A stretch of DNA of 64,000 bases, from positions 34,224,001 to 34,288,000 of the forward strand of contig OZ260663.1 in assembly GCA_965285935.1 (NCBI GenBank). The letters run 5' to 3'. The first letter of the stretch is position 1, and every line of letters starts with the position of its first letter. Below, piece after piece: positions 1 to 28,976 of this stretch. The stretch comes from Ophelia neglecta. Its lineage: Eukaryota. The notes under the pieces were generated by a model that saw nothing but the letters and a program-made list of their open reading frames with translations, was not told the DNA's origin and did not search any database. Made by a program: the position numbers and the translations under genes.

Positions 1-2553
1 CAAGTTAATATACACGCAGCGTTCTGTAGACTGTGAAACGTAAGAAAGCAATACAATTCTATTTGGCTAAAGATACATTCTATTTGGTTCAAGAAGGTTG
101 CTATGTTTTGTCTTAGGTACATGATAAATGTATGGAAAGCCACAAATCGGGATCGAGAGGATGATAATATCAATGAAGAAATGGAAGATATTTCGCAATT
201 AATATGCATTCAACACAACTATTGTGCAGTTCGATTGTTTTGTGTATTGACCTAAATTCGGGAGCGATAGGTTAAGATGTTTTTCCGATTGTCTGTCAAT
301 TTCATATTGTTCCCATTCATAAAGTATTCAAATACCATATCCTAAGCTGAAAATATGTCAGTTCAGAAACAAATATAACATATACACAATATGAATTGTT
401 ATCACAGATTTGTCCTCAAATGTTCATAACTTCAAGTTTTATTGTGGATTACATTTTCCAACGTTGAGAAAGTTCACAGTTTATATATCATTTATACAGT
501 GATGTGTCATTGATGTACAGTGTATTAATAGCTGGTGGCTGCTGTATAAAGACATTACAGAGATATTAGTATGGTAGGCTATGACAGTCAGCAAGTTTTT
601 GCACCTTTTTTGCACAAGGAATAAAGGCGAAATAAGAGGCATTTTTTTCTTAGCACAAGTCTTCTCTTCTGACAGACTACAGTAACCACTGGCGGAGATC
701 GCCTGAACATACGACCCTCGCAAACCAAGTTTGTATATTGAACGGAGCGCCCGCCCGCTGATCACCTTCCTCCCTGGTTAGGCCTTGGTGCCACAACTGA
801 CAAGCATATTCCAAAATTGAACGCACAATTGAGATTATTATTATTATATTATACACTCTAGTCCCTCAATTAACAGGGGTGCTTCATACATGAATTTGTG
901 TATGTGATAAATATGGTGATTATGCATATGGTTCAACATGAAAATATGTGGACTTTTTGAAAAGCGATGCGTATTTAAAATTGTAAGTAAGCGTTTTATT
1001 AATTCATAATTAGTATCACATCCCTCCATGATTGAAAGGACGTAGGAATTTTGAAAGGTGATCCTCCAATTTACCAAACACATGTCTTTACTATCTTCAC
1101 GTTTATTTACAAGCTGCATGTATTTCATTTTAATAAAATATAATACATTACCACTCTTAATTTACATAAAGCTGTTCATCTATCACTGACTTCCTCATGA
1201 CTAGCATTGTCAGTGAAATTAAAAGCCCTGCCTCGGTTACCATCAACACAGTCTGGCAAGCTGGCTGTATATGTAATGTTAATATATAACCCTAGTGGGG
1301 TCGGCGACCGCCTCTAATTACCCCCACTCTTTCTGTTCATGGTTTACCCAAGAAGGTAGGTTTAAGGTTGAGCCACCATTCCGAGCGTCTGCTGCCTATC
1401 TATGTACTCTAAATATCGGTTTTCTTGCCTACCCTGTTCAAGAACCCCGAGTGACGCATGATCATCTGAAGTAGAGGCCTGTGCAGTAAAAAAATAAGGA
1501 GCGACATTGAGTCCTATTAATAGTCCAAATTTCTACCATGATGAGCAATAATTGGCTGACAATGAAACAACATCAGCAGCTTTAAATGGCCTGAGGCAGG
1601 CAATATTGATTGAGGACGCTTCAAATTTGTTATTCATGCTGGACCTGTCACTAGCCGTCCTCATTACTATACCATCCCGCTATTAGGCCTATGTTCGGTG
1701 TTTTTAGAGCCTCTAAAACAAATCCAATCTCCTGTTCATATAAAATAATGATCAGGTCCTGGTATTCGCTGAAAACAGCATCGAACTATATGTGCCATGA
1801 GATGTTGCTCCTGCAACTGACCTATAGATCATGATACCTCTATTGAAAGCCATTGCCCGTTGTCCATGTGGGTATCTAGTTTAAACTATACACCACAAAT
1901 CAGTTAAGTAATCGGGTAAGTAATTTTGCTAGTCGTCAGGGTCCTGACCGCGCACTCTACATTGCGCCTTCATTGATTCGAAAAATGTTTTCATTTTGGC
2001 CAAAAAAGGGGTGGTTTTGTTACCATTACCATAACCGCGCACGCCAAATATGTGTTTTTCTATTTACTTGGCGAAAGCAGAAGAAAAAATATCATCTTTG
2101 AACATAAATCCCTAAAATTCAGCAACAATTCAAAATCATGAACTACAGATCTGTTTCACAATTGGCCTATGTACTTCTTGTAATATCCAGGAAAAGAAGA
2201 AAGTAATATTAATTTCGATACACAAATTCTAGGAAATGTTTAAGACAAATATATCCATAGAAAATCGGATTCACTGCAAAATGATTTCTTGGCACAAGGT
2301 TGGTAACTATTGTTTTTCGGGTTAAAAATTGTCGAAAAGGGAGTATTTCAAGAATGAACTTGAATGTCCTCTTTTTATTAGAGTGCCTGGAATCAATTTA
2401 AAAGTTAGATATCAGAGACCCACCATTAGATAAAGGTAAGTTTTTTTTGTCAAAAGGTTTGATGTTTCAAAATTCGAACATATATTGCATGTTAATAACA
2501 CATTTCAAAAATAAGTAAGTTGATCAGCAATATACTTGGGTATTTCAGACAAA

Positions 2554-5500
2554 ATGACTACAGACATTCACCCAACCAGCGTACAGAACCTGTCAGCTGA
2601 AACCGACGATGGTAGCTACAGTCCTGAGTGGTCTATGTTCATGCCTGGGGGAGCCAATCTACCGTACGACATGCTGGGAGGACCCAAGTACATGGCGGCT
2701 TTCCCGGCAGTGGCCTGGTCCTACATTATCATCGCCGGACTCTTCTCTGTCATTGGTAATTGGACTGTATTCATTGTCAGTTCAATGTAGACGCATTTTA
2801 TTATAGATCGAGGATTCTGTAATACACAATTAATTTGCTTTGCAATTGATTTAATATATTCCTTCTTTTGCCGTACACGACTCTATTGTTTTGATAATAC
2901 ATTATGTACTAAGTAAGCTTGCATTCGTAGGACGTCGTTGGTAAGCGACTGTAAGCTTTGGGCCAGTCGGTTATTTCTGTCACTTGAACAAACAATTAGA
3001 TTCAATCAGTGATTCTCTTCCTTGTAATGGAGTTATCTGTTAGCCTGTTATATGCCCCAATGTTTTCTCTCAACTTTTCTCTACGACCTTCCTTGATGTT
3101 GCCCGGGGTAGATTTGTTTTATACCGGGTAAGTGAAGTGCTGATTTAAGTTTTAGTAATGCCCTCTCAGCAGTACAAGCTTGCATACGAGTACTGAAAGT
3201 TCATAAAACTTTCACTATTAGGGTAAATCAAGAACCCCTATTCTTACAGATAAACAAACGAACTGAATAATCTCTTTTGGCTGTAACCTTGGTCGTTGTT
3301 TGTGATGGCTATATGTGCGATCTGAAACCAAGCAAGGTTTACAAGCGTAGCAATCGTAATCAAACACGGATATTGTGGTGGTCGATCCTATTTTTGTAAG
3401 GAAAGGCTTGGGTGTGGTTACACGCAGGACAAAGTGTTCTCATTTATATGGTACCACAACTAAAAAAAATATGTCTAAAATATAGATTAGAAGATATAAA
3501 AGAAACTGTGACAATCCGTTCCCTGTTATGCTTCCCTTCTCACAGTTAGCAAAAGGATACTGCTCGTAGGATCGATCGCTATATCGATCTTTCTTTCAGC
3601 AGGATGCTGTCACACTTGCATTTCGTACAACTACGGCCAGAACTCCCCTTTCGGAATATATATGACTGGATCTCGACAATGAATAATAACTAGGCATTAA
3701 AAACTCTGGTGTATGAATAAGTGATAATATGATCTAGCACATGGCAGAAAAGTTTATTGGTCGATGCATGTCAGGTGGCACGGTTTTTAAAAGTGACATA
3801 TACAATTTTAACGTTTATATCCGCATGAAATGAGTTGCAATGGGAACAGTATACGACAAACCTGCCAAACAAACGTCCAGTGAGCCACCAGTCTCCCTCT
3901 CGTTTGCACTTAATGGTGTTACTAAGTTTGAACCGATTTTTATTCACATTATTGTAAGTTGCCGATTTTCATTTGTCTGATAGATGTCCACTCCTGTTAT
4001 AGACGTTTAGTGCCAGGAAATATATGTCTTCTCGTAGAAACAGCTCCACTGTTGCTTTTGAGCAACCCAGAGATATCACACGAATACACATGAACGTGTT
4101 TTGAACATACAGGGTATATATATGTACAGGAGTTGGCCATACATGTATATAATTAAGGTGTGTGTGTGTTTACCAGGACTACATTATTGACCCTATTATT
4201 GATTTATTAGTGTCAAATTCCCACAGGACCAAGACGCATTCTAACCCTACGTGCTAATGTTCTTTTTTTATACTTTCTCATCTAACATTAGGCATTGGTC
4301 AAATTTTCAAGTGTGTCATATTCCGGAGATTTCTGTCCAGTAGTCTATTTTTTCTCTTGGTTCTTCTGTGTTTAACCAAACCATTAATACACTAGTGTTA
4401 ATATTTCAATCCACTGGTCTTTTTTCTGCGCCAATTTGAATCCCGGGGTTTTGAGTTTTTTATTGTTACGTATTAGGAAAAATTATTGTTATCCAATGTT
4501 ACTGGTCTACTTTGCAGTAGATGTTTGCTACTGGCATTGAAGCTGTCTTTCATAAAGTTAGTCCTTTCACAATGTAAGTCCTTTCACGTGTTGTTATACT
4601 GAACTCGAAAGTATACATGTGAGTTGTTCAAGGAGTAAATCCTTTCACTGACTTTTCTCACAGGACTCGGAGGTGTGTTCCTGAAAAGTTCTGGCTTGCT
4701 TTGTAAGCCAGGGTCGGCTGTGAATCAAAAGACGGTTGCTGGACAGGAGGGTGTTGGGAGTAGGGTTTGGCTTTGATTGGCGCAGCTAGTACCTTTTGGG
4801 CAGGCTTTGGTTGCGGTTAACAAAGCCGGTCCCAAGTCGAGTGTCGTGGATATATCTGTTGAGAGACGGGCTGGTTTCTGAACTCAACTTTGAACTCTGA
4901 GCATAAATTTGAACACCTGGATCATAAGATACAACATGCCATTATGGATATTTCTTATAATGGTCATTATTCAGTCATTAGGCGGTCATGTGGAGTTTAT
5001 GCATATTAACTATATACGACCTGGAACAACCAAACCAAGTTTAGTGGTTCCAGATACGACCCATTAGATTGGTCGACTGTATTTGATGTATGCACCTTAA
5101 AAAGATGCCCAAGCGTGACAACATACGGATATGATAATATGTCAGTTTTGAAGTAAACATTCCCTTCGTAGCAGAGTACACAGCTCCGCTCTCTTCGCCT
5201 GTAGCACTCTGCCGAAATCAAAAGGGCTTCCCCCATGTATGACATCAAACGGCCTCGTTTTCGAATTCCGGGTTCTCGGAAATTTCCCTCGGTTTTCGGC
5301 AGAGGGTGATGCGGAGAAGCTATGCGATAAGCATTAGCCTCTGCTGCGAAGGGTAAAGTAAACAATGAAGAGAAGTTTTTAGAGAATATCTGGTTACCCC
5401 CTACTGTGGGACTATATATTTATAGCCACAACGAACTCTGATGGCATAAACGATAGCCATGCACGTCGCATTTCATTGTCACCTTGTTGACGCATGATAC

Positions 5501-8500
5501 ATATGTGCACTGATGAAGCCAAGGGTGATTTATCGAGAATATTATTAATGCTAGTTAAAACAAAAGTGAAAGAAGCAATATGTATGTTTGTAACAGGTTT
5601 CACCGTAAACGTTAATATCAATTTAATTGTTCGTACTTTTGTACTGATATGATTGAATTCAACTATTTTCCAGGCATAGCAGGGAATATCATGATACTGA
5701 TTGCTTTCTTTATCAACAAGAATCTACAGAAAGCCCAAAACGTTTTCATTTTCAACCTTTGCCTGGCCGACTTGATGGTGACTGGCCTGGCCGATCCCTT
5801 CAGCATCATCGGTATTTACTTGCAAATGTTTCAACTTAGTATTATAATAATCACCGTGTTTGTGTGATGGGTTGCTTATAATTAAACAGGTACATTATAC
5901 AATGTTGTAAAGCCAACGTGATAGTGTACACAAATCGAGTGTATATACACGTTTGTAGTAAGCCTGTGAAACACGTGTTTCACTACGAATCAAAGGTATA
6001 TGCCAAGTGAAATAAATGGACTTTTTCTGTTAATTGTTTTCCTACTCTACTCGTTGTACATACTACTGCGTCTAAACCGACGCGATGCCGATGCCCCATA
6101 AAAATGCGAAGGTTGAGTCCTTTTAAAAAGGTTTACTAGTACAACATTACCCTGCGTGGCAACTTCACATGCCTTTAAATATATGGCAGCTTTTGTAACC
6201 CAGACTTTGTGTAAAGAATAAATTAAGGGCAGGTTTGAATCTGTTGCATTTAGTATGGGCCATGGCATTTCTTGCAGAGGTTTTAATAATAGTATCAAGG
6301 ATTGGCAAGGTATAAATCACACAGTGTGTCCCCAAACAGGGAGGGAGGGAACGATGGAAGGAAGGAAGGAAGGAAGGAAAAGAAGTGGGGGTGGTTTGTT
6401 GAGTATTGAAGAAACAGAGGGCAAGAGGGAAGGGAGGAAGTATGGATGAGGACAAGATGTTAATGGGAGGAAGGGTGTTAAATGTAATAAGTTTGGCCCT
6501 TTAGAACAATATGAATTGCAATTCAGGTGTACATAATTACAATGTGACAGTGAACACACAGTCACCCTCCTGACGTGTGTTCACAAACAAATACATGCTT
6601 GTAGACACTAACATGTTGTGCCTCCAATGTTTTGGAGGTTGACCATTATAGTTTCCGGCTTTTTTAAACAGAGAATCGACAGATATTAAGTGCACCTATG
6701 TGTGCGGATATCCGTTTATACAAAGAGCGTAGGGAACTATGTACAATGCGCAGCGAACCAGAATTTTTTGTATCAATGGACATACTGGATCATATAGGCC
6801 TATAATCGACAAATCAGATATTAAGTGCACCCGTGTGTGCGGATATCCGTAAATACAAAGAGCGGAGGGGAATCGTTTACAATGCGCAGCGTTTATCAAT
6901 GGACAAACTCGATCGTATTTATAAGCACGTTCTCTATTTGTTAAGATATTAAGTTCTCACTACTAATCGTTAGGGACATTCATAACCGAAGGAGGTGCTT
7001 GATATATACGATCAATTATGTCCATTGATAAACGAAGACCTCTGTCGATGCACTTTATATTTCAGCAAATTGTAACTCAAGGCAAGGCCTACAGTTCGCT
7101 ATACATATATATATATGTGCGTGTGTGAGTGTGTATTTCGCATAATGGACAGCATCAGGACATAAGGTTCAGCTTTTCTACACTGTTTTTAGTAAACCTA
7201 AGTATGGCAATTTTCATCCCCTCCTCCCCCCTCCCAAAGAAAAACAAAACAAGGAGAAAAACACACGAAAACCCATAAATCCATTCGGGTCAATGCCAAT
7301 AGGTGAAAATACCGCCGGTTATAGTGCGATAAATATGTGAATTGCGAATAGTGCGAATCAGAAACGAAATAGAAAACGAGGAAAATCAATTAATATTAAA
7401 TATGGAAAACTCGTATCAATGACTAAAACACTTTGATTCCAAAACCCCACAATTTACATCTATTATATGTATAAGAGCTAAGCTAAGAGTTTCTTGGGTT
7501 TTCTGCTTACAGGGATCACAGGCGGGAAGAAATATTTTGATGAGAGGCCTGGGTTCTGCAATGCTCTGTCCGTAATTTGTTTCACCTCATGTGTCACTGT
7601 TTTACTCAGTATGGGGGGCATCAGCTTCAACCGCTACCTTCATATCTGTCATCCGAACATCTTTCGAAAGGTAAGTTGAAAATAGATGCGATCGGCAACA
7701 GGTTATTGACAAAAGAGAACTCGCTGAAAAGTCTGATTGGTGGATAAAGTATTTAAATTATAAACACGGAGTTGTCGACAATGTTAACCAGATGGCAGCG
7801 CAGCACAGTGCGGGTGTTTTATGCCTAGTGAGGACTATGCTAATATGTAACAGTAAGAACTGTCAATACAAGGTTAATAAGGTCATGAGAAGACCTATTG
7901 ATGGTTCCAATCGTCGGTAACATTTTTAACAGTTACGTTATTTGAAGGTTTTGAAGGTTTTGCATAGTAAGAAAGAGGAGCCGGTTGGGATGTTGTGTGT
8001 GTGTGTGTGGGGGGGGGGGGGCTGCACGGTATTAGGCGGGGCCAAATATGGTGATATCTACTGGCAAAGAGCCAATTTCTTTTGATTTTCTTTATTATGA
8101 CGAAATCTTCACTTATAGGTGTTTAGTCTAAAGAAGAATATCGCCATGTGCATAAGTTTTTGGTTCATCGGATTTCTTTTGGCATCCTGCACATTAGTAA
8201 GTGTAAATATTACGACGTAAGGTTTTAAACTCGTGATATTGATATAAACAACTGAAAATACGGTATTAACTATTTCTATAAACCTATTTCAGAATGGTTG
8301 GTCTAATAATAGGTACGACCCAAAAATGTTGGAGTGCATATGGAACAGACAAAAATCATTTAGTTTTACCATATTCTTTGGCGTTGGGATCGTGTTCACG
8401 CCTGTCATTATAATCACATTCAGCTACGTCCGTATATTTATGCACGTCCGGGCCAGCAGGGCAAAGGTACAAGACAAGGTACGAAGGGTCCGAGATGTTC

Positions 8501-9417
8501 CATCTTCAAATAATATTTTAACCCGTTCAATGTTCATATCCAAATAATACCATATTAAAATTAAGTTCACTGCAAGCATCCAGGTACCATTTACCGTAAC
8601 ATTTGTTTTCTTTGTGACAATGCTTCGGAAAAAAAATCTCATTGTCGTACATTTAATATATTGCAGAAGCATTTATAAATGCACTCAATATAAATCGTTT
8701 TTTGTCATTTATGTGGTAGGACAAAGCAAAGTCCAGGAGTTTGGATAGGTCATTGAAGTTGGCAAAGACTCTCTTTTTGATTTTCTCATTCTTCGTGTTT
8801 TGTTGGACGCCATATGCTCTCTTGGTATTGCTAGACTGGGAAGATAGAGCCCCTCTGGAGGTATTTAACGACCTTAAGTTTGTAGAATAATGCATGCAGA
8901 GGAAATAACATATACTCCTGTTCAATTAGCATTTAAGAAATAAAGTATATAATGTAATGGCATTCCATACACGTTCTCTCAATTGTTCAATGGATTATAA
9001 ATAATCATTAATTACCATTACCATTCTAGGTACATCTATATATTGTTCTGTTAGCACATTTGCACTCTACTGGTAACTGCATCATCTACGGGCTTACCAA
9101 TGTCCAGTTTGCGGTAAGTTACAAAATCAATGTTACTTTTCGAAAAATTCGTAATTTGCAAACTTTCAATTTGGTCTATGGTAGAAGGCGTGTGGCATAT
9201 GTCAAATCAACATTTGCTCATGGCTGATATTGGTGGAAGAGATGCTGAGCATAAAGTTACGCGTTGGCCTTCTGACTTTCAGGACAGTTTCAAGCGTATC
9301 CTTGGCTTCATGACGTGCGGAGGAATCAGACTGCCTACTTCCTCTGAGCAGGTGACAATGACCAACAACACCTCTGTTGCAACGGGAACCACCGGAATTC
9401 ACAAGAGTGGAACTTAG
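2554..9417 (+). CDS. Melatonin-receptor-like class A GPCR, paralogue A (8 coding exons)
   Basis: Exons 2554-2755, 5674-5811, 7513-7670, 8119-8196, 8293-8478, 8720-8860, 9030-9113, 9283-9417, all GT-AG and phase-compatible. Motifs: TM1 GIAGN, TM2 NLCLADL, TM3 FNRYLHICH (NRY as in melatonin receptors), ECL2 RYDPKMLEC, TM6 CWTPY, TM7 GNCIIY. The exon 5 end (8478 vs 8466) was chosen by comparison with paralogue B. Confidence 0.9.
6675..7035. repeat. 135-bp tandem duplication plus short inverted repeat (MITE-like remnant) in GPCR-A intron 2
   Basis: AGATATTAAGTGCACC...TGCGGATATCCG...CAATGCGCAGCG at 6681 and 6816; ~6890-6915 is inverted at ~7009-7034. Confidence 0.7.
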
Positions 9418-12059: not shown

Positions 12060-14620
12060 GCCAAGCACAGAGCGGATGATGTCCCCGTTTCTTCAAAAAA
12101 ATCTAATAATATTGAGATTTTTCCCTGGTCAACCTGTCCCTTGGCTGAACAACGCCACCTCCATCCATATCTCAGCAAGTTTACATATGCCCCCCTTGTG
12201 AAGACAGGCAGGAGCTCAACGTCCTCGTCTGTGCGAGCGTCCTGGTCAGTCCTAACCTGCAGATTTTGATAGGCTGTAAGCCTAGTGCTTAGCCGGTTTG
12301 GGTCTCTTAAATAGGTGATTGTGCCGGCTTGCGCTTATCAAATGACAGTTTAATTACCCATTTTATTTTACATTTTACATTTACCTTTAAGTTGTACGAA
12401 AGACAGCTAATCGAACTGAAGTGACATATAATTGCACGCTTACCCCCCCCCCCCCCCATACATCCTGTCAATATGCAGGGGCTCGCGACCAGAAAATATC
12501 CTATCTTATGAATACGTTTGCTGGCTGGGAATAAGACAGTTTGGGATCATATTATAAGACGCCAAGGTGCTGTTGGGAGAAATCTGTTGGAAACTTGAAA
12601 ATCATTGGGCTTTCTGTTGGGAACTTGAAAATCATCGGGCTTTCTGTTGGGAACTTGAAAATCATCGGGCTTTCTGTTGAGAACTTGAAAATCATCAGGC
12701 TTTCTGTTGGGAATTTGAAAATCAACAATCCAAGGCGTGTTGGTGGCAAATGATTGTACTAAAAATACACAATCAGTATTGTCGTAGTAGACTTATCGTT
12801 ACATAGGCATATGTAGTTTTTTTAACAACTTTCCTTTAAATAATTGCGTTTTTTAGGTTGATCAATTTACTTTCATAGGAATCAACATGTACGATGTATA
12901 GTTTTATTTTTCTTAAACGTTCGTGAGAATTAATACGATAAGGACAGTTTTTAAACTTTTTATTAACAATATAAACACAATTGGACATCTAGAAGTTTTG
13001 TTTACAGGTAAACCTTTATTTACACATGATGCACCCCTGAGTTACAAAGGAAATGTGATTTTTACGACTGTAAAGTTTGTGCTGGTCTTCTGCCCGGGTG
13101 TGATAGTATTTCGTCATTTAGTTCTTATATCGAAAAGGGTTGGTTGGCTTGATTTAAACGAGAAATTATCCCATATGGCTCACACACACCTAGACTAAAT
13201 TTTGAAATGTAACTAAATGTCATTATAATCTCATAATATTCTATAATACCGGGTAAGTATATGCGGTAATTACGGTAAGGATCTACATCTCTTACATCTA
13301 GGCTGATACTAAAAGACATTAACAAAATTCCAAGCATTAATTGTTACAATTGCTTATCTATTATCTATAACCTTACTCATTTGCCAGCTTAAAGTGAACT
13401 CAAGTCCACATATATATTACTACGAGGTTCCAAAGGCCAGCTTTAATCATGATAATAAATGGACATTTAGTTTTGATATGACGTGATGCCTTAAATTGTT
13501 AGAGCATAGTGGGGTCGGGGATACATTCTTGTCTGTATAAAATGTGGAGAGGTATTACGCTGAAGCCCTGAAAACTACATATAACACTATATGGCCAAGA
13601 TGGGTAGTGTATTTTTAATATTCGCCAGAGAGCAGACTCATGCTTTCCTTTTTTTAATATTCATGTAACTATTAGTAACAATTTATGTATATCCAACTAG
13701 TTTTTATTGTTCAGAGCAATCATCGGGCTAGAGAGACTTTTCCCACCACAGAGGAAATGCTCACTATTTCACGGTTCAATATAATAATTTCTGTAACATT
13801 GCATAATGAAAACATAAGTTTGGGAGGATATGGCAGGTTAAATTGAAAATTAAATGGTGTACTATCTGTAACCATCGTTAAAAGTCCCAGGGTTCTTGTG
13901 GATAGCAATCCTTGACCTCCAATACGGGACTCTTTAAAGGTGTTTTGATATCTTTTGTACTGACTGTAGGAGACAGCTGAACAACATTTCTTTTTAGGAG
14001 TCTTCAGCATGAAGACCATATTCTCATCGCTTGTAATTGTACTTAATAACACTTGTTCGAACCTTTTTGCTTCGACCACGGGTACTTGTTTTCTTCTCAG
14101 TAAAGTAAGTGCTCCAGGTGCTTCAGTTCTCCAAGCCACCGATCGAGTGAGGGAAGCTTCATTGAAGTCATTTATATATGCGGTTATTTCACCAATGTTT
14201 TCTTGCAGTTTCCTCTGCATCTTCTCCAGATCACAGATCTGTCAAAAGAGTGACCAAAGCTTTTCGTCCGTGACTCTTTCAGTGCCACTGGCATACTATG
14301 CACGATGCCCACTCTGGGAATAAGGCCATCCCCTCTCATCAAATATGTCACAACGAAAGTCATAAGCAGTCGTGGCCTTAATGAATGCATGTAATAATTC
14401 TCATCCATGTCAATCACAAACAATAAAAACTCTCGAATGCATTTTGTTTAGTAATAAGGTCAGTTCACAAATACACCTAACACTAGTTGAGTTCTTCGGG
14501 TTAGAGAGACCCCTCCTACCACTTAATTCATGCCAGAAGTCCTGTCATGACACACTCACTATATGGTGCTCAAAATCGTATCTATATTCATCTATAAACA
14601 ATTTCTCAGTACACAAAATA
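12060..14620 (-). pseudogene. Decayed multi-exon coding remnant downstream of the transposase, possibly SET-domain-like
   Basis: ORF 13720-14220 contains KESRIGGQGLLSTR (resembles the SET N-terminal S.I.G.GL motif). Exon-like pieces after AG acceptors give YGIISRLNQANQP (~13150) and VRTDQDARTDEDVELL (~12230). The matches are weak. Confidence 0.3.
12583..12725. repeat. 30-bp tandem repeat, ~4.7 copies
   Basis: Unit TCTGTTGGGAACTTGAAAATCATCGGGCTT starting at 12583, 12613, 12643, 12673, 12703. Confidence 0.95.
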
Positions 14621-14929
14621 AATTATACCCGCATTACAAGTATCTGTATTTCCAATCAAAATAAAACTTGAGTTACACTCCGTCTGGTTGAAAACTGTTT
14701 CAGCACTATCATGTCAACTCTGTTGAATGATTATTATCTTAAATCATATTAATAGTTCTTAAAGTTAAAAAACAATCCCATTTATATCAAACAGGTCGCC
14801 TATTATCTACATTATTTACATAATATTCACTATCATGGAATGTCAACATTGGCGTCGGAGGTAAATACATGTTACAAGGCTACCATATTATTCGGTAGAC
14901 TTAGTTATCTTCTGATCACAACGTTCCAT

Positions 14930-17900
14930 CAAAACCAAGGGGTTGTAGTAGTAATATTCATCTGATATGAGAAAAATCTGTGCAAAATGGGCTTTTTTCT
15001 TGAAGATGTGTCGTAACAGAGAGCAGCTCGTACCTGAAAATTATAAATAGTTAAATTAGGTATGCATAGTTATATGCGAGTCATTCATGTTTAGGAGAAT
15101 AACTTGAGAAAAAACAAAATGGCCCATAGGAGTATTCCCAATCATGAATCTATGTTTTTATAGGGGCATAAAATGCAAATAAATAATTCTCAAGCACTTA
15201 TCTAACAGTGGCAACCCATAAAGATTCGGCGGCCCCTCAAAAACATAAAATTCCTGCAGCCCCTGCTTCTCGCCAGCTACAAAGTAGCTTGAGAAACTAT
15301 GTCATATATTTTATTGCCTAATACAGCCATGTGAGAAACTAAGACTTAAATGGCTTTCCTTAATGATAACATACCTACAACTTGAGCTTCTTAGCTGCTT
15401 TGGAACTCTACAAACTGTATCAAACGCACCATTCCTTGTATCTCTAAAAAAATAGAAACACTCATTAACATACATTGGCATATCTTTCAATCGCAGCAAT
15501 ATTCGAAATATAGCCAGCCTCGGCAACAAAATTGAAAATATAGTACCCTACATTCTGAACCAAATATCATAATGAACATTAATATAGATGATTTTACAAT
15601 AAATTTACCTAACATCCGTCCAAAAAGGCACATACATGATGTATGGCCATTGGTTCACTGTCACCGTTGACTGCTGCGTTATTTGTTTGCACTGGCCACA
15701 CTAGTCAACAAATGGACAGCTTTTGTTATACCAAGTCACGATTTCTTGAAGAGGTATGTCTTTTTCCAGATCGGCTGTTTTTAGAAGTTCCTTCAATGCA
15801 GGAGCTAGTTGCCAGCCGAGCAAGTCTTGTGTCTTTGTTCTCTGCCTTTCTTTGTTCCTCGGACACAGCTGGTTGGCACAGGTGAAAACTGTGGTCATTG
15901 ATGAACCGCACAATTTGGGACTTAAACAGTACTGATCCAAACATGGGGTACTCGCATGAATAGCAATTCAATGAGTACAATTTTTTCAGAGAACCACACA
16001 CTACTGTAGGTTTTGTTTCAGGCTGTAAATTCTGAATGAACTTCAAACGGGCTTGGCTCCAGTTGTTGTGACTGCTGTCTGTGGAAAGTAAGCTGAACAG
16101 GTCTGCCAGAGTTGCCAGGAAATGTATCCCCTACCACATTAGTTGGGGTTTCTTTGAACGATCTGTCCATTTGATAACAGATAAATAGTCTGGATAAAGC
16201 CCCGTCAATTACACAGGTGTTTATGAGATCTAACTTAGAATCATTTTTGAATGAAGTCGTGCCTTGGAAAGGTGAAACCAGAGTGTTCAAATCGACTCGA
16301 GTTATAGATGTTGAATTGTCAACTATTGTTTCTTTGGCAGGGCTTTTGTTATTCTGAAAGAAAAAATCTATCTTTTCTGATGGTTTGGCTGGGTTAGACT
16401 TGGATGTTTTAGGTTTGGCTGGCTTGGGTTTGGTTAGTTGAGTCTTCTTCTTACTTGGAATATCACCAAGGGCAGATTCTGCGTTTCTTTTTTAACCGGT
16501 ATTTTCTCTTTTCCTTTCCTCTTTTGCGTTCAGCTTTTCTTTTTCTTTCATGGTCACCAATAGATCTTCATAATCTGACGTTTGTTTTTTTCTTTATGAC
16601 ACGACCCCTACTAGATGTGTTTTCAAATGGTCCTTGGTTTTTAAATAAGTTTGAGCCTAACCAGGCATTGTGAATATCATCATATTTGTCGAATTTTACC
16701 AGGTACAGGGTTTCATGTGTTTCTGGACAGAAATTCTCAGATACAATCTTCTCCACAGGATAAAAGACTTCTGTAGAATCAGTATCACACACCTTTTCTT
16801 CAATTTGTCCAGGATCCTCAGAATCTTCCCATGAATTACCTTTCCCCTTCAATAAATCGACTGTTTCTTCAGATAGCAGTAAATCTTCACTATCTTCATC
16901 GAAGTGAATTTCGGTGAGGATCTTCTTCACAGATGTCCAGTTGACAATCTTTGTAGTATGTGGCCTGATCAGTAACCGTTCTTTGATATCATAGAGAACT
17001 CCTCTCATTTTGGAATTGCTTGTTGGATTAGCACTATACTCTGGTTTGGTGCCATCTATAATGGAATCAATTCTAATAATTGTCACCCAGTTTCCTGATG
17101 TTCTGATCGAAGTGGCATAGATTTTTCCTGGTAGGACAGTATGTTCTTTGGGAATCGGCTTGAAACCATGTAATGGTCCTGCCCAATGCCTCTACGAACG
17201 GGCTTTATCTACATGGTCCTTTCCTGAAATGCACATTTTGATAAACCTTTGAAGATGGATTCTCTTTTCGCCGTATTTAACGTACATTTCCCTGTTGTTG
17301 TCAATAGCACCCTCATCAACATCATCGTCAAAGGCGGTGAGAGCTGGTTCTTCATACACTCTGTCTTCGTCAATGACTTGATCTTCGTCTTCGACATCCT
17401 TTGGTGATTCTTCAATTTTGCCAGGAAATTGGAAGGGCACGTTCAATTTATTATATGGTTGATGTGGTGGCTTTGTTATGACCCAGTCTTCATGATGTTC
17501 ATAATATAAGGGTCTCCCAACAGTCATGCACCTGAAGGGTCTCCTTAAATCCTTTTGGTAACCGTTCCGTTTCATCTCGGCCCCTGGCAAAACCATCCCG
17601 TAGCGCCTGCCGCAACTCATCACGAAATTCCTCATAGGTACTCGGATATTCATAACGATCACCAACCCTCTGTCTCTTCTGATTGGACATTGCAATCTTT
17701 TTTCTGGAGGATGTACTCTTTGATTTGAAACCTTTTTCTTCTAAGATATGAAGTGTGCCCAGGTTCAACTGAGGGTTTGCTGCACGATCTAAAGTCTCGG
17801 CTAATGTTGGTTCTTGGTTAGTACTTTGTATGCTGGTGGTTTTGCACTGTGTCTGGCCAATGAACTTTTCAGTGGCTACAGTGGTCGCCTTAACTGGGGA

Positions 17901-20900
17901 AGAAAATTCCGGTGTAACATTGCCATGTAGATAAAGGGCAAGCTGGTAGTCTATAGTTGCATGGAATTGTACCTCAAAGCTGGTATAGGTCTCTTCAGTG
18001 ATAAAATAGCCTCGCTTGTGGAAGTCATCCTTTGCTCCCGGTTTGGCATAAAGTCTTAGTCCGCTAAGTTCAATATATTTTCGCCAGGATCGCATCATGT
18101 ACATACCAGTCCCAATGGTTTGCATGATTTCTGGTGGAGTCATATCTGCGTCACGGAATGGACACATTAGGTAGTATATCATGTTGATATATATTACAGT
18201 ACCCAGACTATCGGGGACGTACTCTTGCAGCAAATCAGCCATTTTCAAGTCAAACATCTATTAGGCAATATCGGGGTTCTGGTCAAAGAATTCTATGAGG
18301 ATAACATCATTCTCATTCAACTGGAATGGAATACTGTTTTTGATGCAATACTGTCTCAAATGCTGTAGTTGGTCAATAGTGATTATGATTCATTCGTCTT
18401 TGTTCTTATACAATGTCAGGCCTGGGCTTGATTACTTCGGCATACGCACTGCTGAACTTTGATTGTGCTCAGGATCCAAGAGCATGACCGATGGGTAGAT
18501 TCATTAGTAAGGCGACATGAACCTCCCTTCTTTCATTCCAAGACCAAGGTTTTTCACTCATTTGCTAGCCAAGTCTATGTTTGGAGTCATGAAAACCCTG
18601 TAGAATCTGTAATGTGCCCAATGCACTTTATACCAAGTTTGTGGCAAATCTTTCGAAATTCATTCTGGACAAGGAACAATGCAAAAGCGTTGTAGCCTTT
18701 CCGAGGTGTTCCCCAAATGCCAAAGTATTTAGCTGCTTTTCATCATTGGTTAGGCAGGTGAAGTTGTGAATAGATGCATGACTGGCTAGTTTATCTTCTT
18801 TAATCATTTCCAGAATATTTTTTTTCAAGTACTCCACAAAGCTCTTCTTCCGAACATATTGGGAGTTGCATGTTATCTGGCCATGTAGAAGGATTTGGAT
18901 TCCATGATTTTCCTACCAATTCAATATTGCCGTCTTTGTTTCTTATGGCAGTCAAGGTTCTGAAGAATAACTTGACATATTTTCTATCACTTTGATACTA
19001 TCAATATACATGCTTATCAAGATTTGAACCGTAAAACTACAAGCCTATATAAAAATTATAAATTGCTTCTCGAGCTTTCATTTTGCCTGAGTAAAAAAGA
19101 GGGCGACGGGAAGTTTTATTTTTATGTTTTAATTGTTACAACAAAAGGGTGGGTGGGGGAGGGGGGCAGCGGAAGCCTTTTTATTTTCAAAATGGCATAT
19201 ACCTTTTGACCCTTTCTTCATTACTCCATTCCATCACCAGATCTCCTTTGTTTTCAAGACATCAAGGCTAAACCCGCCATCAAAGCTGATTCTAGACTGC
19301 ACTGCTTTAGCAGTGGATGCAGCAGGTAAATCAAACAAGTCCTGAAATATAAATGTTTCATCTAAGTATCCTTTCAGAATCACCAGTGGATTAAGATATA
19401 AGAATTACTTATTTAATTGGATGTAAGTTGCTTACGGCATTTAGGCTTAATGTTTGCAGTAGAACTCAATAGATATACACAAGAAAAAATGAAATAACTG
19501 AACCTTTAGAATATAAAAGTGGTGATCTCCTAAACAGTTTTTGTTCGTCAGGGCTATTTGCTTGATAATTTCTGGGTACTCGTGTTTCCGGCAAGGTTTT
19601 CATTTCATAATCATATTTTCTAGAACAAATCGGTTAACTTTTGAAGAATATTTGTCACTGACAGCTTCCCTAAGTGTTGCACTAAAAATGCTTCGATATC
19701 CCCGACCTTTTCTGCTGAAGTCAGCATATTAATTATTCTTTCGGTTTCTTTTTCTTTGGCAATTTTCTGGTCTATTAACTTATGGCTCGATTTCCCAGAT
19801 TATTTCATTAATTGCATCTTTCCTTTCAGCTGATTTGGTGTTAAGTTTTTCTCCGTTGTTCCTGGCTGGAAGAGTCGATTGTAGGGTGCCACAAGTTTCT
19901 TAGGCTTGTTTTTATCTTTTGTGAGAATGTTCTTCAGGTAGTTTGCAGTCTCGCGGTAGTGAAGGCACATATACCGATTTGGGCCTTGTAATTTCTTGGC
20001 AATACCAGTGCACTTCTTATTTCGGATAACAGAACCAACTTAGACCTTCTTAATGTTCACTAAATATGATACCCCGATATACTCCACTGCAGCTAGGGAA
20101 TAATCTTCTTTCTTCAATTGTTGATGTTCTGTTGGGTGGTTCAATGTCCATTTCTGAAAATGTTTACGTGTTTCATGACCTATACATTTCCGTGTCAACT
20201 TCCGTTCATTGTATAGTGATTCGGCATTCATCCCATGAATAATTCTCCGTTCTTTGAATTGATTCACTACTTCTTCTTCATGTACTCCGAGGCACCTTTG
20301 GGTTAGTATGACATTATCAGATTTTATGAAGTTTTTTAACGTGCGGCGTTGATGGCCCGGACTAATTTCCTTCTGAGCTTGTTCGGGAGATTGCAATGGT
20401 TTTTATAGACCGTGTGTAGTATGCTGATTTCCCATGTTCAAACACCTGCTTCACACCCTTGAACGTCAAGCCTTCGACTTTTTCTTTCTTGTTGAAAATC
20501 CTTTCAAAACTCTGACAAGCGACACATTGAAAGTGGAAAATGCTCCTGATGCTGCTGTTTTTGCGAATTGGGCTACTGTTTGTTCTACCAGGGTCACTTT
20601 AACCTTGAATGGAGGGAAGAGTGTATGAACCCACGCTCTCAACTTAGATGCCTTTGAGTTATAACACCTCCGACTCTGTGCTGCCAGCTTTTCTAGCCAA
20701 TCTTGTTCTAATTTCTGCTCAGGTGGAAGAACGTTATCCATGTAATGACACATTGAATGACTTTCTGTTGTGCCAATGGCTGAACTGAATATGACCATGT
20801 CAGAAACTTTCAACTGTTCATAGATTTTCCGGACTGTTAGTGGTTCTTTCAGCACCTCTTTCAGATACTCATTAAATTCTAAATTGATGATGTCAGACCT

Positions 20901-20980
20901 ACTGGCACAGGTAGATAATTCTGCTTTGAGATTAGACCTGCTGGTGTAAGATGGGCCCTCCGTCGTCTTCTTTACTTCTT
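14930..20980 (-). pseudogene. Decayed P-element-superfamily-like DDE transposase with C-terminal chromodomain and USP-like cysteine peptidase
   Basis: Ordered motifs across stops and frameshifts: DLPAAST (~19330), LVMEWSNEERV (~19225), IKCIGHITDS (~18610), LLDPEH (~18475), FDQNPDIA, MRSWRKY..FITEETY..FHA..TTVATEKF (ORF 17499-18257), chromodomain (ORF 16568-17086), PFQG..INTCVID (~16215), YELLSVTTH..HFAQIF..YYYYN (15033-14935). GT-AG introns at 19342-19503 and 18960-19202. Element termini not found. Confidence 0.6.
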
Positions 20981-20998
20981 TACGGGAGCATATTGATA

Positions 20999-21070
20999 TT
21001 CCCCCGTCCCTATGTTCCCCCGTCCCTATGTTCCCCAGTCCCTATGTTACCCCATCCCTAGGTTCCCCAT
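20999..21070. repeat. 17-bp tandem repeat, ~4 copies
   Basis: Unit approximately TTCCCCCGTCCCTATG(T), at the point where transposase coding similarity stops. Confidence 0.85.
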
Positions 21071-21123
21071 AGGCTACCGTGATCAGCATCGCAGAGAGTC
21101 CTATGGGGTCCTATAGGGCCTAT

Positions 21124-22339: not shown

Positions 22340-22828
22340 TAGGGTCACATAATTAAACAGCATAAGGGTTATTGCTCTTCAGTAAATAAAAATCATATGA
22401 TCATCTGTTAAATAATAAATGTTATGGTTTCCACTCATCTAAAAAATACAACATGTGTTCACATGATGAGTAACAAAAACAAGGGTTATTAGTCGTATGA
22501 AAATAACAAACATGTGTTCACCTGAAGAGTAAGAAACACAAGGGTTACTGCTCAACTATAAATATAAATAACAAATATGTGTCCACCTGAAGGTCAACAA
22601 ACACAAAGTCAGTAAATACCAAAATTGTGATCCCCTAAAGGGTAAGAAACACAAGTGTTACTGGTCGTCTGTAAATAAAAATTGATTACCTGAAGAGGAA
22701 CAAACACAAGGGTTACTGTTCGTTTGTAAAAAAAAAACATGTGTGAACCTGAAGAGTATCGAACACGGAGATTATGCACGTTTTTTTACATAAAATGTGA
22801 TCATCTGAAGATAAAAAACAAAAAGGTC
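22340..22828. repeat. ~57-bp degenerate minisatellite, ~9 copies
   Basis: Core CACCTGAAGAGTAAGAAACACAAGGGTTACTG recurs at ~22346, 22402, 22460, 22519, 22584, 22632, 22687, 22746, 22802; the last unit is interrupted by the Bel element. Confidence 0.85.
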
Positions 22829-24926: not shown

Positions 24927-27900
24927 TCAGTTCATAACAAAATCATTAAAACGTGATGGAGGTTTATGGCTCCTTACTGGTCTCTGGTCTGCAATGGCTT
25001 CATTTACATTTTTTTCATCATAATCACAAGAACTAAAATTTTGAGAATCATTATGCTGCTGAAGGATTTCATCTTGTCCCTCATTCAATTTACGAAAGTA
25101 TGTACTGTTACGCCTGACTTTTCGGCCCTGATCGTCTGCAGCCGTTATTTCTCCTCCCTTCCTGTCGACAACTTTGTATGAGTTGTCCTCGAAATTAGTA
25201 CTCATTTTGTCAGTCTTTTTCATTCGGACCAACACTTTATCGCCGACATCAATCGGATCCTTGATTGCATGCCGTTTCTCATCAGAGTACTTTTTTCCAT
25301 CTAGTTTGTGAAACCAGTCTCTGTCCCTAATTTCTTCATCACATATTTGAGGCTCTCTCCTCAACTCTGGGAGTTTTGTTTTCATCTCCCTACCGAACAT
25401 CATGTAGTAGGGCGTGGCGTTTGTTGAAGCTTGTGGGGTGGACCTATAAGCTATTAAATATTTGTCCAGTTCATAACTCCAATCCTTTTTCTCTGCCTTC
25501 GCTACTCGGATGGCCTTCATCAGGCTGCGATTTTGTCTCTCGACTTCTCCATTTGCCTGTGGCCACAGCGGAGTAGTTTTTCGTGACTCGACACCATATT
25601 CACTCAGAAATTTGCTAAATTCTGCCGATGAGAACTGCGGCCCATTATCTGTCCTGATGGAAAATGGAACCCCGAAGCGAGCAAACATGTGACTTATTGC
25701 TCGTATAACACTCTGTGCTGTCGTTGATCTCAATATGGCCACCTCATAATACCTACTATAGTAGTCCACAACTACCAATATGTTTTCCCCAGTAGGTAAT
25801 GGTCCCAATAGATCTGCTGCCAAATCCTCCCACGGTCCAGAAGGTGGCACCACTCTAGCCATTGGCTCTGGTGGCCTGTACTCGCTCACCAACTGGCATC
25901 CGTAGCATGACCTACATTTCATTTCTGCTTGTCTGTCCATTTTCGGCCACCATACCTTGCTTCGCAGTCTGTTCTTCGTTCGAACAATCCCTTGATGGCC
26001 TTCATGTGCAAGAGCAACTACTTTCCCCCTAAGGGCTTCCGGAATCACTATTCTTGTGCCTCTCAACAAGAGTTCACCATACACACACAGTTCATTTTTC
26101 ACGTGTGCATATACCGGGTATGTGCATCTTTCCCAATTCCCTGTTTTAACACAGTTTTTAATTTGATGCAGTTCTGGATCTGTTCCAGAAGCTTGCTCAA
26201 TTTCTTTGGGGGACAATGTTATTGGTATACTACTTTCTACCACCGATCTCACAAAATCATATTTTTCTCCATGATCCTTGGACTTGGAGTTTAATCGGGA
26301 AAGTACATCTGCTATATTACTCTTTCCAGGCCTGTATACTACCCTGAAATCATAAGCTTGTAGGCGTAGAATCCACCTCTCTATCCTTGCAGATGGTTTG
26401 GATTTAGGGGTGTATATATACTCGAGAGGCTTGTGGTCCGTCTCAAGCTCAAATTCCCTTCCAAAAATGTATAGGTTGAATCTCTCACAGGCCCACACTA
26501 ATGCTAGTGCCTCCTTTTCCGTCTGACTATATCGTCTTTCTACGTCTGTTAGGCAACGTGATGCATAGGATACTACTCTCCATTCCCCATTTTGAAGTTG
26601 GGTGAGCACAGATCCCAACCCCACCGGAGACGCGTCCGCCACAATCCTCGTTTTACCACCCACCTTGAAATATGCCAAGGTATCTGGGTGGGTGATCCTT
26701 TTCTTCAGTTCCTGGAATGCAGTTTCCTGTGTTTTGCCCCATATGAATGGCTGTCCTTTCTTTGTCAGGTCTCGGATGGGCCTGGACAATGTCGCAAGAT
26801 CAGGAATAAATCTCGCTGAAAATTCTACAAGGCCCATGAATGATCTGGCCTCGCTGGCTGTTTTTGGTGCCTCTGCATTCTGAATTGCTGCTATCTTTTC
26901 CTCACTTGGATTCACCCCCTTGTCTGTCAGTTCATGTCCAAAGAATGTCAATTTGGACATTCTGAATTCACACTTCTTACGGTTCAATGTAAGGCCTACC
27001 TCCCTCAACCTGTTCATCACTACACACAGTCTCTCATCATGCTCATGCACACCTTTCCCATGCACAATAATATCATCTGCAATGTTAGCAGCACCTTCAC
27101 ATTTTCTGAAAACATCCTTTATTATTTTCTGGTATTTCTCTGGCGCCGATGATATACCAAACATTAACCTTTTATATCTGAATAAACCTCTGTGTGTTAC
27201 AAATGTGGTTATATGGCGGCTCTCTTCTTTCAGCGCAATTTGATGAAAACCCCAACGAAGGTCAAGCTTTGAAAATAGTGTGCTCTCATTTAAGTCCTGC
27301 AATATGTCTTCCACCGTAGGAATGGGTTGGCGTTCCCTGAGTATAGCCTCATTGGCTCGGCGCATGTCAACGCAGATCCGAACATCGCCGTCACTCTTTG
27401 GCACAACTACCAGGGGCGAGACCCAGTCGGTTGGTCCCTCCGGCACTTCTTCAATAATATCCTGTGCTATAAGCTCATCCAGCTTCTCATCCACCTTATC
27501 ACGTATACCAAAGGGGATCCTCCGCACACTTTGTGCCACAGGTTTAACATCCTGTTTCACATTCAAACCAAGTTCATATCCCTTAAGGAGTCCCACTCCT
27601 TCAAACACATCTTTAAATTTCTCATGAATGTCTACTTCTGTATGTTCTGAAACCACACTGTTAATATGTATTGGACCTACACGGAGAAGCTTCAATTGCT
27701 CTGCTGTGTCACGGCCAAGTAATGTTTTTCCTGGCCCATTTACTACCACAAAAGCAGCTTCACACTGTCTGTTACTGTCCTCTGATGTAATTTTGGCTGT
27801 GAATGTTCCTAATGTGTTCAGAGGCTTCTGACTGCCATAGGCAAACAATACCTTTGCCTCCCTTGTGGTGTCACACTGAATACCCTGAGTTTTCAACCAC

Positions 27901-28976
27901 TGCCATGTAGGCCTACCTAAAATGTTACTAGTGGCACCTGAGTCGATAAGGATATCACTCACATTTACCCCACCTAGATTCAGAGTTACTGTCCCTGAGC
28001 TATATGATTTTTCACAGTTTATGCTAAAGGCATATTCACCACCATTGACATCTGGCTCTCTGGCACCCATTACATTATGTGTGTTAGAGCCTCTACCTGG
28101 ATGTCTTCCATTTCTGGCCCCACGGAAACCTCCTCCGCGCCTCTGGCCTCCTACCTGTCCCTGGCCCATTCCAGGCGGTTGTCCCCGTTTATTTTTACAC
28201 TTAACAGCGAAGTGTCCGACTTCAGAGCAGACCCTACATGACAAGTCTTTTGCCGGGCACTTTTTGTCCCTGGCAAAATGTCCAAAACCTCCACAGGCAA
28301 AACATTCCTTTGCCCTATTGCTGCCCACAGGATTTGACGGTTCGCCCCTCCTGTGATACCCGACAACATTGACATCACCTTGCTTCAAGTGATTTTGAGG
28401 ATTATATGCTGAGCTGGAGTCATAACTTCCGGTATCCATTACTTTAACTTGATGATCAACTGCTTCGAATGCTCTGCCAATAGTAAGACAGTCATCTAAT
28501 TTCACATTGTCTTTTTCAAGGAATTTCCTCCTAAGCTGGCTTGACCTACATTTATCTACGACTTGGTCCCTGAGGTAGTCGTTTTCAGCTTCATCAAATT
28601 CACAGTTGGCAGCCCTCTGCCTAAGTCGACACACAAACTGATCAATTGTTTCATTTTCCTCCTGGGCTATTTGCCGAAATAAATGTCTTTCGAAAGAGGC
28701 GTTACTTTTGGGTGTAAAATAATCATCTAAAATTTTCATGGTTTCAGCATAATTCTGGTCTTCATGTGACAAAGTATAAAAAATATCTTGTACCTGCAGT
28801 CCCGCACAATGCAACAATAGGGCGGTTTTCTGCCCATCCGTTGTTACCCCTTTACTTGTTGAATACAATTGAAAAGCTCTCTTCCACTTTCTCCATCTCT
28901 GTGATATACCGTGTGGTTCTCCCTTCGGGTCAAAAGGCTCCAAATTTCCGATGTCTCCAGCCAGTAAAGCAGCCAT
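24927..28976 (-). CDS. Gypsy Gag-Pol polyprotein, 1349 aa
   Basis: Two CCHC knuckles (CFACGGFGH..C, CRVCSEVGHFAVKC), protease LIDSGA, RT VRICVDMR..NIADDII, RNase H ADAS..TDHKPL, integrase HEGH..CYGC..D..TDNG..EVERQN. The PR-RT-RH-IN order is that of Gypsy. Confidence 0.97.
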   Translation of the reverse strand: MAALLAGDIGNLEPFDPKGEPHGISQRWRKWKRAFQLYSTSKGVTTDGQKTALLLHCAGLQVQDIFYTLSHEDQNYAETMKILDDYFTPKSNASFERHLFRQIAQEENETIDQFVCRLRQRAANCEFDEAENDYLRDQVVDKCRSSQLRRKFLEKDNVKLDDCLTIGRAFEAVDHQVKVMDTGSYDSSSAYNPQNHLKQGDVNVVGYHRRGEPSNPVGSNRAKECFACGGFGHFARDKKCPAKDLSCRVCSEVGHFAVKCKNKRGQPPGMGQGQVGGQRRGGGFRGARNGRHPGRGSNTHNVMGAREPDVNGGEYAFSINCEKSYSSGTVTLNLGGVNVSDILIDSGATSNILGRPTWQWLKTQGIQCDTTREAKVLFAYGSQKPLNTLGTFTAKITSEDSNRQCEAAFVVVNGPGKTLLGRDTAEQLKLLRVGPIHINSVVSEHTEVDIHEKFKDVFEGVGLLKGYELGLNVKQDVKPVAQSVRRIPFGIRDKVDEKLDELIAQDIIEEVPEGPTDWVSPLVVVPKSDGDVRICVDMRRANEAILRERQPIPTVEDILQDLNESTLFSKLDLRWGFHQIALKEESRHITTFVTHRGLFRYKRLMFGISSAPEKYQKIIKDVFRKCEGAANIADDIIVHGKGVHEHDERLCVVMNRLREVGLTLNRKKCEFRMSKLTFFGHELTDKGVNPSEEKIAAIQNAEAPKTASEARSFMGLVEFSARFIPDLATLSRPIRDLTKKGQPFIWGKTQETAFQELKKRITHPDTLAYFKVGGKTRIVADASPVGLGSVLTQLQNGEWRVVSYASRCLTDVERRYSQTEKEALALVWACERFNLYIFGREFELETDHKPLEYIYTPKSKPSARIERWILRLQAYDFRVVYRPGKSNIADVLSRLNSKSKDHGEKYDFVRSVVESSIPITLSPKEIEQASGTDPELHQIKNCVKTGNWERCTYPVYAHVKNELCVYGELLLRGTRIVIPEALRGKVVALAHEGHQGIVRTKNRLRSKVWWPKMDRQAEMKCRSCYGCQLVSEYRPPEPMARVVPPSGPWEDLAADLLGPLPTGENILVVVDYYSRYYEVAILRSTTAQSVIRAISHMFARFGVPFSIRTDNGPQFSSAEFSKFLSEYGVESRKTTPLWPQANGEVERQNRSLMKAIRVAKAEKKDWSYELDKYLIAYRSTPQASTNATPYYMMFGREMKTKLPELRREPQICDEEIRDRDWFHKLDGKKYSDEKRHAIKDPIDVGDKVLVRMKKTDKMSTNFEDNSYKVVDRKGGEITAADDQGRKVRRNSTYFRKLNEGQDEILQQHNDSQNFSSCDYDEKNVNEAIADQRPVRSHKPPSRFNDFVMN

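Follow-up and report, generated by a model that had tools for sequence, protein, structure and literature searches.

What kind of gene left a trail of broken reading frames on the minus strand of a 64,000-nucleotide (nt) stretch of the Ophelia neglecta genome (contig OZ260663.1, positions 34,224,001 to 34,288,000; called the window below)? Stop-to-stop translation of this strand from 21.0 to 14.9 kb gave open segments of 40-250 amino acids (aa) in changing frames. From the letters alone, these had been proposed to be remnants of a single gene for a P-element-like transposase fused to a chromodomain and a domain like that of the ubiquitin-specific proteases (USP). As a whole, this interpretation, referred to here as the original prediction, is largely supported. 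Window 21041-14852 of the minus strand contains the remains of a large DNA-transposon gene, in a copy that is old and no longer functional, and it is probable that the gene in question encodes a transposase of the P/THAP9 type together with a chromodomain and a papain-like protease for ubiquitin or ubiquitin-like modifiers (Ub/Ubl).

An intact copy was sought in the genome of the window itself (G000, the contigs of which carry C-numbers). A search with two window segments led to C31, where both match one and the same open frame of about 1790 aa. This open reading frame (ORF), at 1506-6872 of the C31 locus (L016), extends over 1788 aa from ATG to stop and is uninterrupted through the core, the chromodomain and the Cys-box region. 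In tblastn comparisons the window pieces from about 21041 to 14852 followed the same order as the C31 ORF, residues 285-1756 of which corresponded to window 20654-16111 in colinear high-scoring segment pairs (HSPs). The N-terminal part was 23% identical; for the core, the HSPs had 33-45% identity and E values of about 1e-143. Three exon-like pieces 3' of the ORF (L016:7515-7826, 7890-8042 and 8303-8518) carried the window match on to 14852, the downstream pieces matching window 15763-15608 (E 8e-5) and 15044-14852 (E 3.6e-7). The one long minus-strand frame that had been assembled from scattered ORFs is borne out by this colinearity. The same holds for the two predicted GT-AG introns: exons were searched one by one and the translations across the two junctions served only as a frame check, and excision restored a frame that matches the contiguous C31 protein residue for residue. 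All motifs named in advance (the Cys-containing N-terminus, SNE, ITDS, DPEH, TEKF, the chromodomain and the Cys and His boxes) were found in their places (Table 1). The extent of the decay had been underestimated. Breaks are indeed present, but they are more than a few: in the HSPs about 20 stops lie in frame, and the frame changes at least 5 times.

Because of these stops and frame changes, and because the first catalytic Asp is now Asn and the second His of the N-terminal zinc module is now Tyr, the window copy is considered dead. Since its protein identity to C31 is only 23-45%, the sequences indicate that it is an old separate lineage and no recent copy of the C31 element. The sequences closest to it in this genome are degraded fragments at about 96.57-96.89 Mb of C7 (62-73% identical in aa, 71-82% in nt). 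In all, this interval contains six or more degraded fragments akin to the window copy (36-73% aa, 71-82% nt). As one core part (residues 98-197 of the 252-aa piece) recurs among several of them, a fossil fragment seems to have been duplicated locally. The C-terminal half of the protease-like domain (window 14963-15952) has a 92-95% identical copy at C8:1752021-1752922, far younger than the split of the fossil from its kin; the similarity ends on both sides, and fragment duplication is the likeliest origin. Truncated copies of the C31 element were found on C7, C12 and C5. Where such a copy overlaps the C31 sequence, the two are 96-98% identical, and copies of the 3' extension are 92-98% identical among themselves. 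The C31 copy is itself interrupted at L016:8988 by other repeats (L016:8988-10000; C31:163137-163641), which have many 88-99% identical copies elsewhere and one of which forms an inverted pair on C31 (518 bp, spaced 8.3 kb).

The core of the protein was assigned with the help of relatives gathered from public data by a word-indexed search and an exhaustive HMMER search. The family is of moderate size, with 277 representatives (clusters at 50% identity) at E <=0.001 and 42 at E <=1e-30. Motif columns were counted in, and Pfam core scans made on, 27 cores. Conserved blocks of the core alignment (A1) read D..R..R, GxSTDSA, YxDxDHxxRLxLRxLKY and TxxTExxIxxxQGKT. The first catalytic Asp was found in 18/19 sequences, the second in 26/26 and the Glu in 21/21, and in the DxxH..R block Asp was present in 26/27 and both His and Arg in 27/27. 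An AlphaFold model of C31 residues 601-1300, made on A1, had a predicted local distance difference test score (pLDDT) of 84 and a predicted template-modelling (TM) score of 0.83. In this model D714 is located on strand 1, D844 immediately behind strand 4, and E1099 on a helix following an insertion of about 250 residues, the placement required by an RNase H-like transposase. The best Foldseek match of the model was the P element transposase of Drosophila (E 2.6e-11, probability 1.0), which agrees with the P-like core of the original prediction. In VIA-align the P element transposase reached a Z score of 23.7 (root-mean-square deviation 4.2, 411/442 residues, 6p5a chain residues 128-566), 13 Z units ahead of every other solved transposase (Transib 10.7, RAG1 9.6, Hermes 8.4). 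The insertion domain of the predicted C31 core superposes on that of the P transposase, and the nearest annotated clusters in the ESM Atlas were THAP9/P-transposase families (TM 0.72 and 0.65 over 579 residues). A profile alignment gave the same answer. With an alignment of three canonical P-like ORFs of the same genome, picked with PF21787 (A2), hhalign aligned A1 over 347 columns at 91.5% probability (E 8.6e-7), pairing SSDE with lqDE, STDSA with TCDGA and DxDHxxR with DPPHLLKTVRN. Because the fold comparisons and the profile alignment agree, the core is a distant relative of the P/THAP9 transposases that lies outside the curated sequence models.

The curated models are also the source of the main objections to this assignment. 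At E <=1, no Pfam transposase model matched the 1788-aa ORF, the long relatives or the 27 cores, and none of the curated P models (PF12017, PF12596, PF21787-PF21789) matched the ORF or the 27 cores. The THAP domain (PF05485) was absent from scans of the C31 ORF and the long relatives, and a sequence-profile search of the PDB with the core was blank. The P-transposase profile match that had been set as a check was therefore positive for the comparison with P-like ORFs, but negative for the Pfam P models. The family might accordingly be filed outside P proper, in Zisupton/KDZ, in Kolobok or in a new superfamily. Apart from the missing Pfam P and THAP matches, such a filing is favored by the N-terminus, which has other Cys/His modules: a zinc module CxxC...Hx5H with C129, C132, H159 and H165 invariant in 9 relatives, and further invariant Cys/His clusters. 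Also on this side are Ulp1 fusions among the relatives, the fact that no terminal inverted repeats (TIRs) or target-site duplications (TSDs) were found at the copies searched, and two among the closest Atlas structures, which are unannotated Basidiomycota proteins; moreover, among KDZ and Kolobok transposases no solved structure is known to us that might have competed in the fold search. We nevertheless judge this filing unlikely. The KDZ/Zisupton model PF18758 matches neither the C31 ORF nor the 27 cores (its 12 matches in this genome are all at loci other than these copies), the lead of the P transposase over all other solved transposases is large, and hhalign ties the core to the canonical P-like ORFs with the catalytic motifs aligned. 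P elements are textbook transposons, yet this branch slips past every curated Pfam transposase model.

Canonical P/THAP9-like elements occur in the same genome independently of these copies. PF21787 marks 24 such loci, none of them at the copies described here (e.g. C1:140564517-140564957, L033, and C5:33328862-33329302), and the window is about 0.9 Mb away from one of them. At several loci the frame is open over 680-852 aa without a stop, so that ordinary P-like elements may have been active recently in this genome.

The evidence that the fused gene is part of a mobile element is good but incomplete. A 2193-aa relative (P0006 group) is present in four copies on four contigs of two public assemblies (ERZ25067889 and, for one copy, ERZ25073780). 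These copies (L060-L063) share blocks of about 8.65-8.9 kb that are 99.2-99.97% identical and start and stop at the same bases (5' ..ATTATGCTGATTAATTG, 3' ..GGGTACTCCTG(AA)). The P0008 cluster contains 75 members at 90% identity, including two Porites lobata proteins, and identical 1612-aa products of this cluster were found on several contigs of coral-associated Tara samples. The near-identical copies and the 90%-identity cluster including P. lobata suggest recent activity of the family. Aligned copies had been expected to reveal TIRs and a TSD of 7-8 bp; the boundaries proved sharp, yet neither expectation was confirmed. No TIR of at least 12 nt was found when the 30 kb surrounding the C31 copy were compared with themselves, nor in the window, on a 16-kb coral contig or on L060-L063 despite their sharp ends, and comparison of the boundaries of the C7, C12 and C5 copies of the C31 element gave no inverted repeats of at least 12 nt. 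No duplication was readable at the fossil, the C31 copy, the coral contig or the four near-identical copies; at the latter this is because the flanks form a mosaic shared pairwise, as after recombination. Copies in this genome are few, and no RNA evidence was obtained for the C31 gene, the contigs holding it being DNA-like and without splice joints. The missing TIRs and readable duplications, the low copy number and the lack of RNA evidence count against the preferred reading.

Several of them would suit a host gene family instead, i.e. a domesticated P-like transposase joined to chromatin and ubiquitin modules and segmentally duplicated, of which the window would hold a decayed member. The small copy number, the spliceosomal introns, the missing TIRs and TSDs, the long intact ORF persisting on C31, and the flanks of the relatives, shared pairwise as by recombination or segmental duplication, are all in line with it. 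However, the 99.2-99.97% identical blocks stop at the same base while their flanks differ, identical 1612-aa products come from several contigs of coral-associated samples, several copies in this genome were truncated and decayed independently, and the three catalytic residues are kept across the family. A host gene family is therefore considered very unlikely.

Repeats of other kinds adjoin several copies. Around the fossil there are tandem arrays at 20996-21075 (16-nt unit), 22354-22824 (about 58 nt) and 12583-12732 (30 nt). An array with a 165-bp unit lies 5' of the relatives, over 4.6 kb at L060:4937-9587 and also on L063, and satellite adjoins the copies at C7:42.97 Mb, C5:80.42 Mb and C7:44.8 Mb. 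On the coral-associated contig with a 1612-aa relative (L038:8349-11339), an 18-nt motif, GCGGTGCAGAAGAAATCA, and its variants are found six times in inverted orientation on the 3' side of the gene, and the upstream ORF of 596 aa contains one more; subterminal binding sites are a possible explanation.

The remaining parts of the predicted protein are a chromodomain and a protease. The Pfam Chromo model (PF00385) passes its cut-off in the C31 ORF (27.9 bits against 25.1, residues 1493-1528) and scored 31.1 in P0002 and 33.2 in P0047. In the window it falls below the cut-off, and this weak match was the sole one in a Pfam scan of all window fragments. By inspection, the aromatic-cage positions are Y, F and Y in both C31 and the window. 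In the relatives a protease follows the chromodomain. P0002 carries the core, Chromo and a full UCH domain (PF00443, E 1.5e-20, 74.3 bits, profile positions 3-254/254) in one predicted protein, P0003 the core, Chromo and a partial UCH (E 3.1e-10), and P0072 the same core with UCH, whereas P0009 (E 2.2e-27) and P0011 combine the core and Chromo with Ulp1 (C48). A precomputed PF04843 label on P0009-P0011 was absent on rescan of P0009 and P0011 and was dropped. From the architectures of P0002 and P0003 as against P0009 and P0011, which have the same core-chromodomain-protease order, it follows that the protease class differs between branches and its place behind the chromodomain is kept. Since one predicted protein carries all the parts in the relatives, they are not independent nested fragments, and the transposase-chromodomain-protease fusion is real, as had been predicted. 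Nested insertions, i.e. a transposase fossil beside an integrase fragment of a chromovirus and a pseudogene of a host USP, would agree with the many frames of the window copy and with a Ty3/gypsy element 4 kb away, but they are ruled out as independent fragments by the uninterrupted C31 frame, in which core, chromodomain and Cys box are joined, and with the same order recurring in P0002, P0003, P0009 and P0011 we give them practically no weight.

The class of the protease in the branch of the window and C31 is less firmly placed. Their divergent C-terminal domain matches P0001 and P0004 (34% identical to each other), in which it is contiguous and reads PWGG..NG..INTC(P/T)ID..LS, then two CxxC pairs about 55 residues apart, then H(W/F)R..L...G.W..YNP. 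We take the order and spacing of these motifs to resemble the Cys box, the finger zinc ribbon and the His box of USPs. The Cys box, the two CxxC and the His box were also seen, by inspection, in the window pieces and in this order. In language-model features P0001 and P0004 adjoin UCH clusters (0.95; 184 and 182 shared features). The results of homology and structure methods do not favor this class. Pfam UCH had no match in the window pieces, the C31 C-terminus and downstream pieces, P0001 or P0004; hhalign of the P0001/P0004 C-terminal domain with the UCH domains of P0002, P0003 and P0072 was non-significant; a PDB profile search with the domain returned nothing; and an AlphaFold model from the two-sequence alignment reached a pLDDT of only 39. 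Likewise, tblastn of UCH domains against the window gave nothing, and homology searches for additional C-terminal domains of the P0001/P0004 type gave none. The USP-like protease of the original prediction is therefore present as UCH in P0002, P0003 and P0072, but in the sub-lineage of the window, with no Pfam UCH match, it is represented by motifs and language-model features only, which make it likely that the protease of this branch is USP-like.

If the preferred reading of a P/THAP9-type transposase gene with a chromodomain and a papain-like protease is followed, the intact form would be one giant protein of about 1800-2200 aa. Its parts, in order, would be Cys/His-rich zinc modules, which presumably bind the element ends, a P/THAP9-type RNase H-like DDE core with the DxxH insertion, an acidic linker, the chromodomain, a basic linker and a papain-like Ub/Ubl protease, of USP type in this branch and of Ulp1 type in others. 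The core would perform cut-and-paste transposition, as the P transposase does. The chromodomain may bind methylated tails of histone H3 and tether integration to heterochromatin, by analogy with chromoviral integrases, and the protease could shield the element by removing ubiquitin or SUMO, whether the modified target is chromatin, a host silencing factor or the transposase itself. This scheme concerns the intact relatives, the window copy being a fossil. That some branches have USP where others have Ulp1 is compatible with selection acting on deconjugation as such and not on a particular fold.

Each part of this architecture has a counterpart in known systems. Elements of the P superfamily have TIRs, a TSD of 7-8 bp and guanosine triphosphate as cofactor, which is bound by the insertion domain. 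With P element and THAP9 transposases the family shares the RNase H-like DDE core, a large insertion between the second Asp and the Glu, the D(2)H-type motif, introns in the transposase gene, the closest solved fold and profile-level homology. It differs from them in being about twice as long, in the added chromodomain and C-terminal cysteine protease, and in having neither a Pfam P match nor a detected THAP domain, with other Cys/His modules instead. In Zisupton/KDZ transposons and in the Ulp1-carrying Mutator-like elements known as KI-MULEs, a transposase gene is linked with an Ulp1-type (C48) protease, and in this respect they resemble P0009 and P0011. Unlike Zisupton/KDZ, the present family has a core of P-type fold without a KDZ Pfam match, a chromodomain and, in the window branch, a protease of probable USP type. 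The integrases of chromoviruses (Ty3/gypsy) have a C-terminal chromodomain thought to tether integration to methylated histones. Here, too, a chromodomain stands C-terminal to the RNase H-like catalytic domain of a mobile-element recombinase, but theirs is a retrotransposon integrase without a Ub/Ubl-class protease, whereas this family would be of the cut-and-paste type. Papain-like deubiquitinases (OTU, VTD) are carried by Helitron and Helentron proteins and have been proposed to protect proteins needed for transposition, and cnidarian genes in which deubiquitinase domains are fused to transposon-associated domains have been described (PMC9741609). The likeness consists in a transposon protein with a papain-like deubiquitinase; the Helitron and Helentron proteins combine RepHel with OTU or VTD and have no chromodomain, and the present family combines DDE with USP or Ulp1.

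In the searchable literature, a scope that does not extend to Repbase and Dfam, we found no account of a P-like transposase that carries a chromodomain together with USP or Ulp1. A more far-reaching proposal, which we put forward tentatively and would sooner doubt than accept, is that the family is an uncatalogued P-related branch of superfamily rank in marine invertebrates such as corals, with some members still active, in which a histone-methyl reader and interchangeable USP and Ulp1 modules serve targeting or counter-silencing. The fixed order of transposase, chromodomain and protease and the swapped protease class point to selection for removal of ubiquitin-like modifiers at chromatin. They raise the question of whether DNA transposons counter ubiquitin- or SUMO-dependent host silencing and select chromatin states for integration. 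Cnidarian and other invertebrate genomes, in which genes of this kind currently appear among the predicted host proteins without a name, would be better annotated for repeats with a profile made from these sequences.

Table 1. Parts of the fossil gene in the window, in the order of the minus strand (window positions)
Feature	Positions	Strand	Remarks
N-terminal region, open segment with RAWVHTLFPP block	20469..21041	-	matches C31 ORF from about residue 285; block conserved in alignment A6
First zinc-finger-like module CxxC...H	20365..20598	-	CVACQ 20526-20512; EHGKSAY 20439-20425; second His position is Tyr
Intron A, 162 nt, GT..AG	19342..19503	-	excision joins ..LGDHHFYILK to DLFDLPAAST.., in agreement with contiguous C31; LGDRNYRILKELFGLP
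First catalytic position WSNEE, Asp to Asn	19214..19228	-	aligned to ESSDEAR of C31; column is D in 18/19 relatives with a residue there
Intron B, 243 nt, GT..AG	18960..19202	-	excision joins EWSNEERVKR to TLTAIR.., in agreement with C31; ESSDEARIRRTIEPRI
Transposase core	17502..18997	-	ITDS 18613-18596; DPEH 18476-18465; insertion domain; TEKF 17873-17856; 45% identity to C31 (tblastn)
Clean 252-aa stretch inside transposase core	18257-17502	-	stop-to-stop translation
Acidic linker after core	17195..17740	-	colinear with C31 residues of about 1219-1400
Segment containing chromodomain (about 16765-16640)	16571..17191	-	PF00385 E 0.0013, 19.1 bits, below cut-off
K/P-rich linker and Cys box (LINTC, 16227-16213)	16021..16491	-	LINTCVIDGALS; tblastn with C31 C-terminus E 1.6e-9, P0004 E 3.9e-8, P0001 E 1.7e-5
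Remaining protease-like domain, in pieces	14852..16020	-	CxxC 15968-15954; CGQC 15700-15689; His box AHFAQIFLISDEYYYYNP 14992-14939

Two further elements were noted in the window. On the minus strand, 24927-28976 is an intact ORF of 1349 aa with reverse transcriptase, RNase H and the zinc-binding and core domains of an integrase, i.e. the pol of a Ty3/gypsy-type long terminal repeat retrotransposon; the block of about 24-32 kb has a G+C content of 0.44-0.47, compared with about 0.37 around it. On the plus strand, the reverse transcriptase model PF00078 partially matches a 162-aa ORF at 47205-47693 (E 5.8e-6, below cut-off), which is probably another retroelement fragment.

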